A stretch of DNA of 63,892 bases, counting the filler, from Octopus bimaculoides (lineage: Eukaryota), in the NCBI RefSeq assembly GCF_001194135.2. It is 4 parts of 4 records of this genome, joined end to end, with 100 filler letters (N's around TTAATTAATTAA, not from the genome) between each part and the next. Parts side by side here need not be neighbours in the genome. Positions count along the whole stretch, not along the records: positions 34,760 to 41,259 come from NC_068989.1; 3 more parts are not named here. One strand, 5' to 3'. A program made the translations under genes and the position numbers. This document shows, piece by piece, positions 34,760 through 41,259 of this stretch. The first letter of the stretch is position 1; each line of letters opens with the position of its first letter. The notes under the pieces are model-generated. The model did no database searches and was not told where the DNA came from. It saw nothing but the letters and a program-made list of their open reading frames with translations.

Positions 34760-35460
34760 ATAAGTTATGGCTGACACAGTTGACTGAACAAGTCCAGTGG
34801 TAGTACTAAACAATCAATGCTCTGAATATTTCTGTCAAGTGTTTGTAGAGAATGAACACATGATTAAGTTTAGAACCTTCTGTATGTTTCCCCACTATGT
34901 CTATGCATTAGTGTCAAGTGGCAGTATATTTAGTGCCTAAAATGAAGGCCGATACAGTTGCGTGAACATGTTTAGTTGCAATCAAGGCACTCCATATTTA
35001 ATCTGTTTGGTGGGAGAGTAGACAGGAGTCGTTTGTATGGAGTCCAGTAGCTAAAGTTTAGGTTGTTTGCTGTGTAGGTTCCTTATGTTAAGTGGCAGAA
35101 TAAGTCTTGTGTGTGAATAATTATTTTTGTATGTACTTTGTTCAAGTTTGTTAAGTCTGGGTTTGTACTTTTGTATGAAAGTATTTTCTTTGTTTGTCTA
35201 TGTTTCATCTGTGGTATTCACTTAAAATAGGTAGAGTGGAAAAACCTGGAATTTAGTGGACTTATTTTTGCACATATGTCTATGTGTCCACTCAGTGGAA
35301 TCTGTCTAGAACTGGGGTCTCGTATTTGTTGTCGGTGAATGGTCAGTCTATTTCTTACAGTAAGCTTTGTTTGACCTATGTTATCTTCATACACTAGTCA
35401 GAAGCAAAACAGCTGCGGCATAAGCCATGTCTTTCAATTTCAAATTTTTGAAAAGCAGTG
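34760..35460 (-). mobile_element. Penelope-like element fragment (GIY-YIG endonuclease end)
   Basis: Minus strand encodes IGQTKLTVRNRLTIHRQQIRDPSSRQIPLSGHIDICA followed by KENTFIQKYKPRLNKL, a typical PLE GIY-YIG C-terminus. Confidence 0.8.
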
Positions 35461-35584
35461 TAAACTATAAAACTGGTTAAATCTTTAAATATAATAATAA
35501 AATATATATTAACTATTCTCAGTGCATTTTCAACTTCTAATTTTCCTATATTTCTACCCATGTGGAATAGAATAACTTTGTTTT

Positions 35585-35659
<75 letters not shown>

Positions 35660-36570
35660 CAATGGGTTTTTTGTTTCCATCTACCAAATTCACTCCCAAA
35701 ATTTTGGTCAGCTTAGGGTTATAATAGAAGACACTTGCCCAAAGTGTGACATGATTGGAAAAATAAGCTTCTCAGGTACACAGCCAGTTCATTTACAAGA
35801 TACCACTGGTACTGATGATGTACCAGTCTGTTGCAGGGTTAAGCCACAAGTAATAGGGTAGATTCACTAGCTGCCATACGTACTGATAATACTTCAGTTT
35901 GTTGATAGGTTAACCCACTAGCTGCCAGTGGTGTTGAGGGTACCCTAGCCTATTGATGGGTTAACCCACTAGTTTCCACTGGTACTGAGGGTACACCACA
36001 TCACCCTGAAATGCATTCTCTGCATTACCTTCCACCTACTAGCTAGATTGTGATCGCCATTCACTTCTACAGCACCATCTATCTATACCTTACCCCTCCC
36101 TTACTCTCTTACCCACCCATGCATCACCCTCTATCCATACACCCACACTCACACATCATCATCATCGTCGTCATCTTCACCCATTTCTACCCTCTACTCA
36201 ACCAACACCCCAGCAATAACAAGAAGTAATAAAAATCAAAGAAATGTTGATAACATTGATAACATAAATTTCTTGAATCTTAACACAACAAAATATCTTT
36301 CAAAGAACTATTAATCAGGATATTGTCCAAAATATACTGGTCCCCTATGATTAAAAAAGCTTTAGTGGCTCAAGCAACTGTTAATTCCTGACCAACGAAA
36401 TTTTCACAACATTCCTTGTCGTATTTCTAAGCAGTCTGCGAAAAACTCGTGACTCTGTCCATTGCAGAGGCTAAGTCAACAAGGAATGACTTTTGATTTC
36501 AAAGTAACTACTTAAAGAATTAAATTGTACAAACGAATTTGGCCAAAACGAATTCGTTATTTCATAAAGA

Positions 36571-36847
36571 ATGCATAACATTCTATGGTCAACGATAATT
36601 GTTTTATACTGTTTCCAACCAGTGCAGACAACATGGTGGAATATATGTATTACCAAAAAAATAACTCCATGGTCTGCCTGCAGACATAGATGCAGTGATA
36701 TCTCTAAAAGACAGGTAATTGCCCAATGCTCATTTATTAAAAACAACTTACAGATATGTGCTTACTACTGTGGAATCACAGACACCAGAACATCAAAGCC
36801 ATGTTATCCGAGTGGATGCCACTCATCACAATATTGTTGTCCAAATC
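36571..36847 (+). CDS. First coding exon of secreted Cys-rich TSP1-like protein, copy 1
   Basis: Encodes MHNILWSTIIVLYCFQPVQT-TWWNICITKKITPWSACRHRCSDISKRQVIAQCSFIKNNLQICAYYCGITDTRTSKPCYPSGCHSSQYCCPN (92 codons + 1 nt). It has a hydrophobic signal-like N-terminus, a WSxCxxxC motif, 10 mature Cys and a C|GTGAGT donor at 36848. An open paralog lies at 39533. Confidence 0.8.
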
Positions 36848-36868
36848 GTGAGTACTTACTGTTTAATA

Positions 36869-37374
36869 TTTTTTTTTTTATATCGTTTGCTAACTACTTG
36901 AAGATACAATATATATATTGCAAACAACTTGCAAGTACAAGTGCTACAGGTTGAAAGCTCCGCATACCAGATGCTAGCAAGTTTATGATGTCATTGGAGA
37001 GAATGTGTGCCATTTTGGGGCCTTCCTCTCTGTAGCATCATTGTGCAAACCACCCATCCTCATTGAAATGAAGCCCTGCTTAATAGATCAACTGGTTATT
37101 AGCTTTCGCTCAATATTCTTTCTTGCACATTGTCTCTTTTTTAACCAAATCTAGCGGCTCGCCTTCTCCACTGTAGTCTGGATGTCACTCATAGTGGTAT
37201 TTGTTCTATGATGAGTTAGGCCTAGCAACAACAACAGTCACCTCACACTGTGTCCAACAAATCCTCTACATCCAACTTCGATTGGAAAATGCTCTGTTTT
37301 CCAGCCTGCATCTTCAGATTCCTCAAGGAGGTTTTTATAGCAGTCGATCTTTCAATCCTGAGTGGCATCCACCA
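36869..37374 (-). mobile_element. 5'-truncated HERO-like (RLE) non-LTR retrotransposon
   Basis: Minus-strand translation is CYKNLLEESEDAGWKTEHFPIEVGCRGFVGHSVR*LLLLLGLTHHRT..TTMSDIQTTVEKASR*IWLK, with stops and a frameshift. EVGCRGF and the EKASRxIWL C-terminus are typical of HERO-clade RLE domains. A T11 run (poly-A on minus) sits at 36869-36879. Confidence 0.75.
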
Positions 37375-37460
37375 GGATGTCACTCATCACAATATCATTG
37401 TCCAAACCATAAGTACTCACTACTTTATAACACTATTAATATTCTCTTCCTAATTTCAGT
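37375..37460 (+). pseudogene. Decayed duplicate of exon 3' end, donor and intron start of copy 1
   Basis: 37375-37417 matches 36814-36856 with 6 transitions in 43 nt. The donor GTGAGT has become ATAAGT. Confidence 0.75.
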
Positions 37461-37639
37461 AATAAGTTTATTATTATTTAAACACACAGATGTGGCTGTG
37501 TGTCTAAAAAGCTTGCTTCCCAATCACATGGTTTCAGGTTCATTCCCACTGTGTGACAACTTCAACAATTGTTGTCTACTATAGCCCTTAGGGTGACCAA
37601 AGCCTTATCAGTAATCTACAATAAGTCTCCATAAAGTAT

Positions 37640-37960
37640 CAAAAATATAAACTGCGCTCAGCATCAGGCTCACAATCATGAGGTAGTGAATTCAATTCCC
37701 AGACCAAGCTGTGTGTTGGGTTCTTGAGCAAGTCACTTTATTTCACGTTGGTCCAGTTCACTCAGCTGTAGAAATTAGTTGCAATGTCTCTGGTGCCAAG
37801 CTGTATCAACCTTTGCTTTCGTCTTGGATAACGTCGGTGACGTGGAGAGAGGAGGCTGGCAGGCAAGGGCAACTGCTGGTCTTCCATAAACAACCTTGCC
37901 TGGACTTGTGCCACAGAAAGTAACTTCCTAGGTGCAATCCCATGGTCATTCATGACCATG
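37640..37960 (+). mobile_element. tRNA-headed SINE, family E
   Basis: B-box-like gaattcaattccc followed by ttcttgagcaagtcactttatttcacgttg. A related head occurs at about 2580-2690. Confidence 0.6.
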
Positions 37961-38199
37961 GCGGGGGGGGGGGGGGGGGTCCTTTATAATTACAGATAAT
38001 ATAGGGCCACTGTAAGCCTTTTCACTGGGCCTTTCACAAGGAGTTCATTATGATACATAAGCAGCAGTTATAATTTGAGAAAAATATTTCTTGGGAAATC
38101 TTCAAATATATTTAATGTTTTGCACTGGGCAAAAATGTCTTATTATTTCTTTTATATGATTACAACTTTAAATGTTGATGTCTCCTGTACTCTGGGATG

Positions 38200-38410
38200 C
38201 TTTTAAGGAACCAGCTTTTAGTTAAGTGTGACAAGATTCAAGTAGAAGAAAATTATGTCCCTTAAATATGGAAATGGCAGTTACTGTCACACAAGTTACT
38301 CTAGTGAACTGTCCCAGTGATGTTTGAATTGTACTCTCCAGTGTGTTGTCCAGTTGTATCTCACCAGTACAGAGTGTTCAATAGGATCTAAATCTGGGCA
38401 GTATGTTATT
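38200..38410 (-). mobile_element. Possible Tc1-like transposase relic
   Basis: Minus strand encodes PDLDPIEH, similar to the Tc1 motif SPDLNPIEH. The rest is degenerate. Confidence 0.35.
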
Positions 38411-39532
38411 CAGAATAGGTTTTAGCCCATGCCAGTGGGTCCCAAACCCTCCACGTCACTGATGTGTCCAAAGAAGCAGCATGTGTCCATAAGAAATGAG
38501 CTTCTTAACCACACAGCTAGTCCGTTGCAAGACGATTTCACCAAGCTACCACTAGTACTGATGATGCCAGTCTGTTGTAGGGTTAAGCTACCAACAGCCA
38601 CTAGAAGTGAGGGTAAAGTAGTCTGCTGAGGGTAAACCTATCAGCTGCCACAGATACTGAGGGTACTCCACTTTCTTGTTGGGTTAGCCCACAAGCTGCC
38701 ACTGGTACAGACAGTACCCCAATCTGTTGCAAGGTTAACCCACAGATATCCACTGGAACTGAGGGTACATGATATTACCTTGGAATTTATTCACTTCTCT
38801 ACCTTCCACCTACTAACAACATTGTGGTCACCCTAATTCTACGCACGCACTACAACACCTTTTTTCTCCCTTCTACCCTTCGGTCCACCCACTATTGTAT
38901 TGCTTTCTACCTACCCTCTATATGAGCCTCTTTTTACCTTTTATTACCAACCACTACCCACCAACTAGATTACTTTACAGCCACCCTCTACCCCCATATA
39001 CTTCTTGATCACCTTCTACCAACATCTTATCCATTCCTACGTCACCCTCTGTCTGGCCACCCCACACAATCATCATCATCACCATCATCATCATCGTCAT
39101 CTTCCTTTTCTACCCTCTACCCAACCACCACCACAACAACAACAACAAGTAATACACAGCAACTAATCGTTAGGGTGTTGACAATATTGATAACCTATAT
39201 TCCAATCAAAAAGAAAACAAAAACACAAAATATTTTTCAGATAACTATTATTCATGATATTCTCAAAAATGAATTAATCCACCTTGATTAAAAGAGGTTT
39301 AAGTGGCTCAAGTTAACGTTAATCTCTGACCAATGAGATTTTTGCTGCGTTCCTCAGCATGTTTCAAAGCACTTTGCAAAATGATATTCACAATGTCCAT
39401 TACAGTGGATAAGTCAACAAGGAATGACTGTCAATATCAAACTTTGGTGCAGTAACTATTAAAGAATTGAATTGTGTGCAAAAATTGAAGAAAATAATTG
39501 TGTGAAAAAAAGAATTCTTTATCTCATAAACA

Positions 39533-39833
39533 ATGCATAGCACTCGATGGCTAATGATAATTGTTTTAGTCTGTCTCCAACCGGTGCAAACTTGGTGGCT
39601 GGGTAAAGGCCGTAGTAAATCTCCAAACAAATGTTCTTCTAAACGAATTACTTCATGGTCTGCCTGCACACATAGATGTGGAGATATTTCTAGAAGACAA
39701 GTAAGTGCCTCTTGCACAGATCATGGAAACAGCTTACAGCAATGTGCTTCAGTCTGTGGAATCACAGACACCAAAACATCAAAAGCATGTTATCCGAGTG
39801 GATGCCACTCATCACAATATTGTTGTCCAAATC
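39533..39833 (+). CDS. First coding exon of secreted Cys-rich TSP1-like protein, copy 2
   Basis: Encodes MHSTRWLMIIVLVCLQPVQT-WWLGKGRSKSPNKCSSKRITSWSACTHRCGDISRRQVSASCTDHGNSLQQCASVCGITDTKTSKACYPSGCHSSQYCCPN (100 codons + 1 nt). It has the same 10-Cys spacing as copy 1 and the same phase-1 GTGAGT donor at 39834. Confidence 0.82.
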
Positions 39834-40175
39834 GTGAGTACTCATTACATTATAATGCTCTTAACATTTTCTTTCTGATTTCAATAACACTATGTAACAA
39901 GGTCTTTGTCCTTGGATAGAAACTGTTATTTCCTACTTACTTGCCCTGAGAAAGTATGAAAAATGGCTAATATTTCCTTCAAACTTTGCTTCTATTACAG
40001 TTATTCAAATCCTCAAAAATACCTCTCAGCACATGGCTATAATGATCCCTCACTACTCCTGCTCACAATCAGAGATGCCAATTCTGTCAGCCATTAAGGG
40101 ATATGCTTAAGTGGTTAAGGTCAAGCAACTGACAATCAAATATGTGGTACTAAACCGAATATTTGATATAATATA

Positions 40176-40580
40176 GGTGCAGGAGTGGCTGTGTGGTAAG
40201 TAGCTTGCTTACCAACCACATAGTTCCAGGTTCATTCCCACTGTGTGGCACCTTGGGCAAGTGTCTTCTACTATAGCCTCAGGCCGACCAAAGCCTTGTG
40301 AGTGGATTTGGTAGACGGAAACTGAAAGAAGCCCGTCATATATATATATATATGTATGTGCGTGTATGTTTGTGTGTCTGTGTTTGTCCCCCCAGCATCA
40401 CTTGACAACCGATGCTGGTGTGTTTACGTCCCTGTAACTTAGCGGTTCGGCAAAAGAGACCAATAGAATAAGTACTAGGCTTCCAAAGAATAAGTCCTGG
40501 GGTCGATTTGTTCAACTAAAGGTGGTGCTCCAGCATGGCCACAGTCAAATGACTGAAACAAGTAAAAGAGTAAAAGAGTA
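40176..40580 (+). mobile_element. Near full-length tRNA-derived SINE, family A (CORE-like; octopus OR-type candidate)
   Basis: A box gtggctgtgtggta, B box ggttcattccc, CORE-like ttgggcaagtgtcttcta, internal (TA)/(TG) tract and (agtaaaag)n tail. About 20 homologous fragments occur in the window (e.g. 1690-1925, 7565-7670, 22170-22345, 23030-23195, 25740-25910, 37485-37620, 43575-43720, 52130-52290, 59890-60060). Confidence 0.9.
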
Positions 40581-40862
40581 ATGATATTTCTACTTCAACA
40601 ACTCAGTGCTGAATCTGTCTGAAATGTAATGGAAAATAGGTCAGTTTCAAAATATTGATATCCAGGTCACAAAAGCAAAGTTTGAAGGGAATAGTTGTTA
40701 TTTTGTTTGATTTTTAGAGAGAAGCAAATAGGAAACAACACTTACTGACCAAAGACTAAAATAAAGTAAATCTCAATCCACAGTGCAGCACAACCATGGT
40801 CATGTGTCAAAAAAGCTTGCTTCCCAATCACATCGTCTCAGGTTCAGTCCCACTGTGTATCA

Positions 40863-41048
40863 TTTGTACACGTTCCTGTCAAGACATCAGGTGCTCTCGG
40901 ACCCCACACAGCTGATTTCCTTGGCAAAGTCAAGATGACAGCAACTCATTTGAGAAATGAGCCCTGCAAGGTGGAATGGATGTTGCAAGTGTCACTGGCC
41001 ATTCTCCATGGCAACATCTTTGCATTTATGTCTATGAGGCATGGCTGA
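40863..41048 (+). mobile_element. CRE-clade-like non-LTR retrotransposon 3' ORF fragment
   Basis: FVHVPVKTSGALGPHTADFLGKV...EWMLQVSLAILHGN resembles the CRE RLE C-terminal consensus FVPxAVETxGxxGPxA..LQRLSxAIxRGN. Confidence 0.65.
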
Positions 41049-41259
41049 ACATACCATTTGGACTAGAATGTACAACCTGTTACTCCCTCCCCTGCCATCC
41101 TTTGTTGCTTAATTCCATCCCTCCACTTTTCCTTTGCTTTGTGTCCTAGGTGAAGTAATTCTGGCAGGGGTGGGGTGGATCTTAATAATTTAATATTTTA
41201 TACTTTTAATTTTTTTTTTTTTCTTTTCTTCTTGTAAAAAAATATGTTGTTAAATAAAA

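Follow-up and report, generated by a model that had tools for sequence, protein, structure and literature searches.

A candidate tandem array of lineage-restricted, secreted cysteine-rich proteins in Octopus bimaculoides

Background

Lineage-specific secreted genes are believed to lie behind novel traits of cephalopods, among them venom, the biology of skin and suckers, and reproduction; those rich in cysteine are a source of new disulfide scaffolds. Among described families, WAP domains display an eight-cysteine core, C-xn-C-xn-C-x5-C-x5-CC-x3-5-C-x3-4-C, while Ly6/uPAR domains are marked by an N-terminal C-x2-C and a C-terminal CC-x4-5-C-N. Thrombospondin type-1 repeats adopt a layered fold of three strands, free of helices. 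WxxC is a known consensus for C-mannosylation, and phase-1 exon boundaries are frequent among extracellular modules.

The window considered here is a stretch of 63,892 nucleotides, filler included, composed of four joined parts of the O. bimaculoides genome; positions 34,760 to 41,259 come from NC_068989.1, and all coordinates refer to the window. An earlier, sequence-only reading had described a tandem pair of "TSP1-like" exons in this part, named after the thrombospondin type-1 repeat (TSR).

Structure of the two exons

36571..36847, + strand: exon A; ATG, 20-aa signal-peptide-like start, 72-aa basic ten-cysteine domain (TWWNIC...CCPN), phase-1 end
36848..36853, + strand: splice-donor consensus GTGAGT after exon A, read from sequence; A-B identity falls from 80 % to 49 %
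39533..39833, + strand: exon B; ATG, 20-aa signal-peptide-like start, 80-aa basic ten-cysteine domain (WWLGKGRSKSPNKC...CCPN), phase-1 end
39834..39839, + strand: splice-donor consensus GTGAGT after exon B, kept in the orthologue; identity falls from 91.4 % to 76.2 %

Exon A extended from its ATG at 36571 to a final base at 36847 (277 nt) and exon B from 39533 to 39833 (301 nt), both therefore ending in phase 1. An in-frame TAA lay two codons ahead of each ATG and an A occupied position -3 relative to it. The peptides read MHNILWSTIIVLYCFQPVQT followed by TWW in A and MHSTRWLMIIVLVCLQPVQT followed by WW in B, and shared 64 % identity (BLASTP, E 6e-44); the exons differed at 50 nucleotides (80 % nucleotide identity). 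In a three-way alignment exon A displayed one in-frame deletion of 24 nt, in contrast to many indels in the flanks. The two paralogous open exons of the sequence-only reading, with WW in each and GTGAGT at a phase-1 end, were confirmed, and sequence constraint stopped exactly at the donor. Likewise supported is its view that the two are paralogous coding exons which open the reading frame of a secreted protein rich in cysteine.

The signal peptide was assigned by rules (n-, h- and c-regions; small residues at -1 and -3). The first 20 residues comprised a basic or polar n-region, a hydrophobic core of 9-10 residues and V-Q-T/S at -3 to -1, the regions reading MHSTR / WLMIIVLVCL / QPVQT. Hydrophobicity of the 9-mer at residues 4-15 was KD 2.54 in A and 3.69 in B. 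Position -3 was V, and position -1 was T, with S, a conservative change, in the orthologue. By this rule-based test, both copies displayed the features of a classical signal peptide.

The mature part within the exon measured 72-80 aa and carried 10-12 K+R against 2-3 D+E, for a net charge of about +8 to +9 (about +8 in A). All ten cysteines were conserved in the spacing C-x10-C-x3-C-x11-C-x9-C-x3-C-x10-C-x4-C-x5-CC, which direct reading found identical in both copies, as had been claimed; the domain probably has five disulfides. Features of cationic cysteine-rich effectors were assembled at this locus: a small exon-coded mature part, net positive charge, invariant cysteines, lineage restriction and tandem duplication. 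The word "small" may be wrong for the whole protein, whose final size depends on downstream exons. AlphaFold modelling, which had been proposed for the disulfide topology, returned low-confidence models with two helices (AF2, pLDDT 57 and 68; four of five mature-peptide models at 40-51). An internal duplication of the half-domain C-x10-C-x3-C-x11-C was considered and rejected, since only the spacing repeats (hhalign probability 0.65 %).

Comparison with known families

The WSACxxxC motif noted earlier was present in both copies, while the glycine that follows it in the TSP1 signature was found only in B, A displaying CS. The "TSP1-like" label itself did not survive. The HMMER/Pfam check suggested for TSP_1 was run as an hmmscan of both peptides against Pfam-A, TSP_1 included, and returned no family at E<=10. 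Comparison by hhalign with a TSR alignment of seven sequences gave a probability of 9.8 % over 14 columns (residues TSWSACTHRCGDIS). The WxxWxxW ladder was lacking, W42 alone preceding the cysteine with I at -6 and S or K at -9; instead of an alternating RxRxR after the motif there was an adjacent RR in B and KR in A. Neither CTHRCG nor CRHRCS carried Ser/Thr before the second cysteine, as in the POFUT2 site C-x-x-S/T-C-x-x-G, and the count of ten cysteines, as well as their spacing, differed from the six in about 55 aa of a TSR. Foldseek of the AF2 models (pLDDT 57, 68) against the PDB gave no match at E<=0.001, TSR structures included. By profile and motif the domain is not a thrombospondin type-1 repeat, and the short WSxCxxxCG motif is by itself no evidence for one.

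The domain did not match two further families either. WAP/crustin membership found no Pfam match, and the exon stops right after CC-P-N, so that two closing cysteines would need another exon. Ly6/uPAR membership also lacked a Pfam match, the domain ending ...C-x5-CC-P-N without a further cysteine. The framework C-C-C-C-C-C-C-C-CC is not known to match any described one.

A sequence profile search of the PDB gave no match at E<=10, and the Foldseek comparison of the two AF2 models with the PDB uncovered no relative. When 5.8 billion protein clusters were searched by word index (queries B and A), and 1.84 billion representative proteins exhaustively with an HMMER profile, only P0001, the orthologue described below, was retrieved; metagenome and viral scans retrieved no relative. 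Peptide strings and the name Octo-SAP gave no match in the papers searched, no transcript, spliced read or annotated protein with exon A or B was found in any searchable collection, and exact look-ups of both read-through ORFs for further flanking contigs had no match. The earlier admission that the family could not be named holds, because Pfam, the PDB and 1.84 billion representative proteins contain nothing related beyond that orthologue.

The duplicated unit

35796..36570, + strand: upstream (promoter-side) part of unit A, with an inverted SINE-like fragment at its upstream edge
36473..36492, + strand: palindrome AAGTCA-N8-TGACTT of unit A, ~100 nt before the ATG of A (three-way alignment)
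37330..37410, + strand: relic of a third unit, last ~27 exon codons only (family D4; tblastn E 7e-6 to 1e-5)
38542..39532, + strand: upstream (promoter-side) part of unit B, its proximal 240 nt better conserved across species than the distal part
39411..39430, + strand: palindrome of unit B (last base G), ~120 nt before the ATG of B (alignment)

Exons A and B sit within a tandem unit of roughly 2.96 kb which combines ~1 kb of upstream DNA with the exon. That the ~1 kb before each ATG is also duplicated was uncovered by self-BLAST and is absent from the earlier note. Identity between the two upstream parts climbed toward the ATG (35796-36075 against 38542-38846, 69 %; 36107-36856 against 39025-39842, 72 %), and stood at 70-75 % upstream versus 80 % in the exon. 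Upstream DNA of unit A belonged to families D3, D6, D8 and D9. Compared with the orthologous DNA (L001), the far and middle upstream parts of unit B were 81-82 % identical and 39291-39532 reached 86.7 %. In the three-way alignment A and B shared the palindrome, and the orthologue kept both of its arms with two spacer bases changed; it is a candidate cis-regulatory site.

The relic at 37330-37410, which the earlier note did not mention, reads GFYSSRSFNPEWHPPGCHSSQYHCPNH; one cysteine is lost (CC to HC) and its donor has changed from GTGAGT to ATAAGT. Its first ~50 nt of intron (to 37462) resembled the intron of B, 37375-37462 and 39800-39887 sharing 82 % in self-BLAST. Differences between A and B amounted to 26 % in the 5' part of the exon versus 7 % in its last 100 nt (P=7e-5), and synonymous codon differences in these last ~100 nt numbered one between A and B versus four between B and the orthologue. 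The array, of two intact units and one relic, displays birth-and-death and apparent gene conversion, and would be a compact case of both processes in a lineage-restricted secreted family.

Rfam and tRNA scans of the piece 34,760-41,259 gave no match. Derivation of the exon from a SINE was rejected: tblastn gave a weak match (E 0.011), while DNA alignment against shuffles was inconsistent and at chance level for B and the orthologue.

Selection on the reading frame

The orthologue (P0001/L001), from a related species, displayed 86 % protein identity to B. It was low copy, with one contig per individual in five sequencing runs and three near-identical alleles. Between B and the orthologue, dN/dS was 0.33 overall, with 0.26 for the mature part alone, at a dS of 0.19, and synonymous changes were in excess (P about 0.006-0.017). 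Identity was 91.4 % in the exon against 81 % in the flanks (P=1.7e-5) and fell to 76.2 % in the 80 nt past the donor (P=6e-4); for A and B the exon stood at 80 % and the following 75 nt at 49 % (Fisher P=2.6e-7). Exon A kept Met1, an open frame and every cysteine, for which the chance probability is about 0.00025 with 50 differences placed at random, and its cysteines were kept in the non-converted 5' two-thirds as well.

Plus-strand frame 0 was the sole frame open in both species, and omega was lowest there. Antisense ORFs at 36471-36746 and 39400-39717 (minus strand) were rejected; stop codons interrupt them in the orthologue, and the low omega of these frames only mirrors shared third positions. 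These patterns of substitution indicate that the reading frame of the exons is under selection. On the branch leading to A, omega derived from the dN/dS analysis was about 0.7-0.8, which fits relaxed as well as diversifying selection.

High-copy spread with dN/dS near 1, regarded by the sequence-only reading as evidence against its own proposal, was not what the B-orthologue comparison (0.26-0.33) and the low-copy orthologue displayed. Its "cephalopod-expanded family" is putative: the copies found amount to two intact ones plus the relic at this locus, together with one orthologue of low copy number in a related species.

Downstream exons

41150..41193, + strand: candidate terminal exon, from acceptor and ORF enumeration; speculative, could be chance

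As both exons end at a phase-1 GTGAGT, at least a short C-terminal piece would come from a downstream exon. Among pyrimidine-rich acceptors past B, the best, ttcctttgctttgtgtcctag, immediately precedes the candidate exon at 41150. Read in phase 1, this exon would append REVILAGVGWILII followed by a stop codon; an AATAAA lies at 41253-41258. A search for its orthologous DNA with the adjacent 57-aa ORF gave no match. Beyond this candidate no downstream exon was identified; the continuation into EGF or sushi modules that had been envisaged is hypothetical.

Discussion

The locus is best explained, with a probability of about 0.6, as a tandem array (two intact units and a relic) of an unannotated gene family, restricted to one lineage, whose secreted and strongly basic products probably contain five disulfides. 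The product would enter the ER, where the signal would be cut after VQT; the basic domain would fold as a compact five-disulfide knot before export, and at least a short C-terminal piece would be supplied by a downstream exon through the phase-1 GTGAGT donor. Such a small, cationic protein with a fixed cysteine scaffold, tandem birth-and-death and taxonomic restriction would be typical of extracellular effector peptides, and in one paralogue fast-changing loops were indeed observed on the fixed cysteine scaffold. Effector classes that may be envisaged are host-defence/antimicrobial, venom/salivary and reproductive/pheromone; a cationic host-defence or toxin-like effector is preferred, with low confidence, on general features only.

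The alternatives differ in whether the ORFs are genes at all and in what the domain is. The ORFs might be unexpressed or recently dead duplicates, or repeat cargo that merely looks constrained. Searchable collections yielded neither expression evidence nor annotation, the locus is crowded with SINE-like repeats, one unit is already dead, the A branch has an omega of about 0.7-0.8, and gene conversion from B could keep the 3' end of A intact-looking. Such a reading is nevertheless unlikely, given a B-orthologue dN/dS of 0.26-0.33, a rise in identity that is limited to the exon, a low-copy orthologue, exon-SINE DNA similarity at chance level, and cysteines retained in A beyond its converted end. 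It is less likely still that the domain is a highly divergent TSP1 repeat, which might form the N-terminal module of a bigger extracellular protein with TSP1 and EGF/sushi domains. B does display WSAC-x3-CG followed by basic residues, exactly the motif selected by hhalign, its WxxC matches the C-mannosylation consensus and phase-1 boundaries are common in extracellular modules; but the absence of a Pfam match at E<=10, an hhalign probability of only 9.8 % over 14 columns, a single Trp, RR/KR adjacent rather than R-x-R, G replaced by S in A, ten cysteines at non-TSR spacing and no POFUT2 site all speak against it. The low-confidence AF2 models contain helices and found no TSR by Foldseek, and protein searches uncovered no annotated multi-domain protein with the exon.

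Other alternatives concern the gene model. A single gene may use A and B, and once the relic too, as alternative first exons, every one with a promoter and a phase-1 donor of its own and all spliced to common constant exon(s) past B; this is possible, though the odds are against it. The duplicated unit consists of upstream DNA, exon 1 and at most ~50 nt of intron, and self-BLAST found 36850-38540 to have no homology to 39890-41259 downstream of B, SINE-like repeats aside, so that A is kept intact although no copy of a downstream exon can be recognised for it. A and B share one donor sequence and one phase, their last ~100 nt are homogenised, and 41150 offers a candidate constant exon. On the other hand, this exon could be chance, the real downstream exons of B may lie outside the piece, and A could instead splice to some short, unrelated exon within 36850-38540, or it could be a truncated duplicate whose decay is recent. 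Such a model is compatible with the description as an orphan secreted protein and changes the gene model. Tandem promoter-plus-exon units with same-phase donors, as in variable first exons, were found at 35796-36853 and 38542-39839, with the relic at 37330-37410. More doubtful is the further step to a miniature variable-exon array, whose units would carry different versions of the new ten-cysteine domain, one at a time being joined through an identical phase-1 donor to constant exon(s) common to all, for which the short hydrophobic tail exon at 41150 may be a candidate; if true, the octopus would use promoter choice to diversify a secreted or surface-tethered protein on a fold without known relatives. 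Least probable is that no splicing occurs and the ORF reads through GTGAGT into a 127-133 aa protein, its hydrophobic C-terminal tail (EYSLHYNALNIFFLISITLCNKVFVLG, then a stop) acting as an anchor of membrane or GPI type. The frame does continue for ~24 codons past the donor in B, the relic and the orthologue, and the tails are hydrophobic, but T-rich intron starts give hydrophobic residues by default, and the tail of A is unrelated in sequence and length. The idea was rejected on the loss of constraint past the donor, where identity drops from 91 % to 76 % across species and from 80 % to 49 % for the two paralogues.

On present sequence evidence, the preferred reading of a secreted, lineage-restricted array would amount to a solid find of an ordinary kind, an orphan pair of genes for secreted proteins rich in cysteine. 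If expressed, it would represent an unannotated, taxonomically restricted family whose cysteine framework, and probably fold, are unmatched in protein and structure resources.

Compared with TSP_1 (PF00090), the domain shares W-S-x-C-x3-C-G followed by basic residues, an extracellular, disulfide-rich nature and a phase-1 exon boundary; it differs by the lack of a profile match, of an Arg ladder and of an O-fucosylation site, by its one Trp and ten instead of six cysteines, by a motif Gly not conserved in copy A and by a predicted model with helices. Ly6/uPAR proteins resemble it in size (about 80 aa), in their ten cysteines, in a CC pair close to the C-terminus with N after it and perhaps in a hydrophobic tail, whereas here there is neither an N-terminal CxxC nor a final C-N after CC, and the hydrophobic tail is intronic or speculative. 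Vertebrate clustered protocadherins and UGT1A also consist of tandem units of a promoter and one large 5' exon with same-phase donors, unduplicated downstream exons and homogenised neighbouring units, while here only two units are live, constant exons are putative and a small secreted domain replaces the cadherin ectodomain or enzyme. Big defensins, macins, crustins/WAP-type and conotoxin-like frameworks gave no sequence, profile or fold match, and unlike in invertebrate defence and toxin peptides the whole domain and its signal peptide lie here on one exon. They nevertheless share with the octopus pair a signal peptide ahead of a small basic multi-disulfide domain, a fixed cysteine scaffold with variable loops, tandem birth-and-death and a narrow taxonomic range, and the tail C-x4-C-x5-CC recalls the C-x5-C-x5-CC of the WAP core.

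Tandem units and their exons

The two open plus-strand exons proposed in the sequence-only reading were recovered in the piece 34760-41259 (NC_068989.1) with exactly the positions and features claimed. They are listed here with the associated elements.

36571-36847, +, exon A from its ATG (277 nt), followed by GTGAGT at 36848-36853
39533-39833, +, exon B from its ATG (301 nt), followed by GTGAGT at 39834-39839
37330-37462, +, third unit, reduced to a relic (~27 terminal exon codons and the intron start)
36473-36492 and 39411-39430, palindrome AAGTCA-N8-TGACTT, ~100-120 nt 5' of each ATG (in orthologous contig L001 at about 1157-1176)

Given their lengths, both exons finish in phase 1. Each displayed an in-frame TAA two codons 5' of the ATG and an A at position -3, and both were therefore considered first coding exons rather than internal ones. 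The peptides shared the elements MH...IIVL.C.QPVQT, WW, ten cysteines of identical spacing (C-x10-C-x3-C-x11-C-x9-C-x3-C-x10-C-x4-C-x5-CC) and a terminal CCPN. Their signal-peptide-like starts, matching cysteine spacing and 64% identity (BLASTP, E 6e-44) bore out the description as secreted cysteine-rich paralogues.

The exons formed part of a tandem duplication whose units lie ~2.96 kb apart (roughly 35796-36856 and 38542-39842). Units A and B each consisted of ~1 kb of upstream DNA, the exon and at most ~50 nt of intron, with nucleotide identities of 69-72% overall and 80% in the exon. The A-B interval and the DNA 3' of B were homologous only in SINE-like repeats. In the relic, the CC pair had become HC, with loss of one cysteine, and the donor ATAAGT; GTGAGTA was retained in A, B and the orthologue. 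The intron start of the relic (82% to B) was nearer B than A, which implies more than one duplication event.

In the alignment, A, B and the orthologue all retained the palindrome arms, with differing spacers, and the palindrome may represent a candidate regulatory, possibly transcription-factor, site. Between the conserved upstream block and the ATG of B, a 26-nt tandem duplication (39458-39510; ATTAAAGAAAAGAATTGTGTGAAAAA, n=2) was present in the orthologue as well but not in A. The distal upstream parts (35795-36000 and 38541-38770; 36154-36179 and 39069-39148) displayed ~50-nt degenerate repeats (…CCACTGGTACTGAGGGTAC…GGGTTAA…), possibly an old mobile element, followed by a C-rich tract with CAT/ATC and CAA triplet runs.

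The remainder of the piece was mainly composed of SINE-like repeats, a (TA)36 tract and a G17 run, and Rfam and tRNA scans detected no RNA genes in it. One SINE-like repeat, presumably an abundant octopus SINE, occurred as four copies or fragments in 6.5 kb (37492-37612, 40185-40303 and 40803-40858, +; 35641-35746, -). Its inverted copy, with a (TA)36 tail (35584-35656), lay directly 5' of unit A, and a comparable inverted fragment lay 5' of unit B (about 38503-38541). A second, distinct SINE-like element (about 37650-37979) ended in 17 G (37963-37979). SINE-rich genomes have been reported for octopods (PMC7656900).

Orthologue and coding constraint

The sole relative among 5.8 billion protein clusters was P0001, 86% identical to B. 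This ORF was called on ~1.7-kb Logan genomic contigs (L001-L005), a single project having supplied all five runs (SRR11869384, -85, -90, -91 and -94). As their alignment with the B unit covered 1393 nt and showed 80% identity, the contigs were assigned to the B orthologue of a related species. Identity to B was 81% far upstream, 82% mid upstream, 86.7% in the proximal 240 nt, 91.4% in the exon and 76.2% in the first 80 nt 3' of the donor (exon versus flanks, P=1.7e-5; exon versus post-donor, P=6e-4). For the exon as a whole dN/dS was 0.33, and for its mature part 0.26 (dS 0.19), with an excess of synonymous changes (binomial P 0.006-0.017). Plus-strand frame 0 was the only one of six open in both species and displayed the lowest omega. 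Antisense ORFs of 91 and 105 aa overlapped both exons (36471-36746 and 39400-39717, -); they were interrupted in the orthologue and were therefore rejected as genes, and they probably arise as a side effect of the sense frame.

In copy A, the initial methionine, the open frame and all cysteines were retained together in only 0.025% of random placements of the 50 A-B differences. The single gap in the exon alignment was in-frame (24 nt), with flanks full of indels. A-B dN/dS was 0.66-0.70, and three-taxon branch arithmetic on the dN/dS values gave an omega of ~0.78 for the branch to A, so that its loops appear relaxed or diversifying on a conserved scaffold. Non-functionality of the A and B ORFs is considered unlikely.

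Five individuals of the related species displayed six SNPs in 1716 bp, one of them exonic (P88S). Each yielded one contig, which indicates a low-copy gene. All five contigs had two break points in common, and L001 lost its homology to the window at positions 331 and about 1657. The orthologous locus thus has different flanking DNA, probably a repeat. An A-type ORF of this species was absent from the protein collection.

Apparent sequence exchange between copies

Exon divergence between species was uniform, at 18/210 for the 5' part and 9/100 for the 3' part. The paralogues differed at 48/186 positions (26%) in the 5' part but at 7/100 (7%) over the 3'-most 100 nt (P=7e-5), a tract that included the donor (36757-36856 in A, 39743-39842 in B). 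With the orthologue as O, sites of the pattern B=O≠A prevailed by 39 to five in the 5' part, and those of the pattern A=B≠O by seven to five in the 3' part (P=0.0017). Over the last 33 codons, one synonymous codon difference separated A from B and four separated B from the orthologue. These patterns suggest that, once the species had separated, gene conversion acted on the exon 3' end and the donor, with a tract stopping just past the latter; very strong constraint on CYPSGCHSSQYCCPN is a less favored reading that keeps some weight.

The predicted protein

Residues 1-20 displayed the three signal-peptide regions, with V and T/S at -3 and -1 (rule-based). The mature parts of 72 aa (A) and 80 aa (B) began with WW, contained the ten cysteines and were cationic (K+R 10-12 versus D+E 2-3). 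WxxC fits the C-mannosylation consensus. An internal repeat (C-x10-C-x3-C-x11-C, then C-x9-C-x3-C-x10-C) was rejected, only the spacing being recurrent (hhalign 0.65%).

The sequence-only reading had left the family unnamed, and so it stays: Pfam gave no match at E<=10, PDB sequences nothing related, an exhaustive search of 1.84 billion representatives with a HMMER profile the orthologue only, and JGI metagenomes and IMG/VR no relatives. The exons were not annotated in any resource queried. AF2 models from a shallow alignment were of low confidence (pLDDT 57 for the full exon; 68 with pTM 0.51 for the mature peptide, the remaining four models at 40-51) and displayed two short helices; Foldseek found no meaningful match to them in the PDB.

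Competing interpretations

The preferred reading, with a probability of about 0.6, is that a lineage-restricted family arranged in tandem encodes a secreted cationic domain, probably with five disulfides. The phase-1 donor announced earlier agreed with the exon lengths and with the loss of similarity beyond it. Interspecies identity, 91% in the exon, was 76% just 3' of GTGAGT; for the paralogues the corresponding values were 80% and 49% (P=2.6e-7). This sharp loss supports a splice donor over unspliced read-through into a hydrophobic-looking tail, which appears highly improbable. Among pyrimidine-rich acceptors in matching phase the next exon was not identified; one attractive candidate (41150) would contribute REVILAGVGWILII before a stop codon, and AATAAA lies at 41253-41258; orthologous DNA was sought for this candidate without success. 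Within the exons, phase 0 donor-like sites (CAG|GTAATT at 36715 in A; CAA|GTAAGT at 39701 in B and in the orthologue) could be cryptic or alternative donors, cutting the domain after the third cysteine.

The main structural rival holds that the units are alternative first exons joined to one or more shared downstream exons. It would account for the duplication of promoter and exon 1 alone and for an intact A lacking downstream exons of its own, and we regard it as a serious minority view. The thrombospondin type-1 (TSP1) likeness claimed from the sequence fared worse. WSAC-x3-C was present in both peptides and the completing G in B, but A displayed S, and the likeness was limited to TSWSACTHRCGDIS (hhalign 9.8%, 14 columns). 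In contrast to TSP1, the Trp ladder, the alternating Arg ladder, the six-cysteine pattern and the O-fucosylation site were missing. The domain was therefore not filed under TSP1, and a divergent TSP1 or large modular protein is very unlikely.

For the tandem family of secreted domains, generic hallmarks hint tentatively at a host-defence, toxin-like or reproductive effector. Octopod-specific genes are reported to show their highest expression in male reproductive tissue (PMC7656900), which keeps a reproductive role in play. Should the units prove to be variable first exons, or the fold prove new, the locus would gain in interest. Compared with known systems, the domain is a new cysteine framework inside the familiar category of orphan secreted disulfide-rich proteins.
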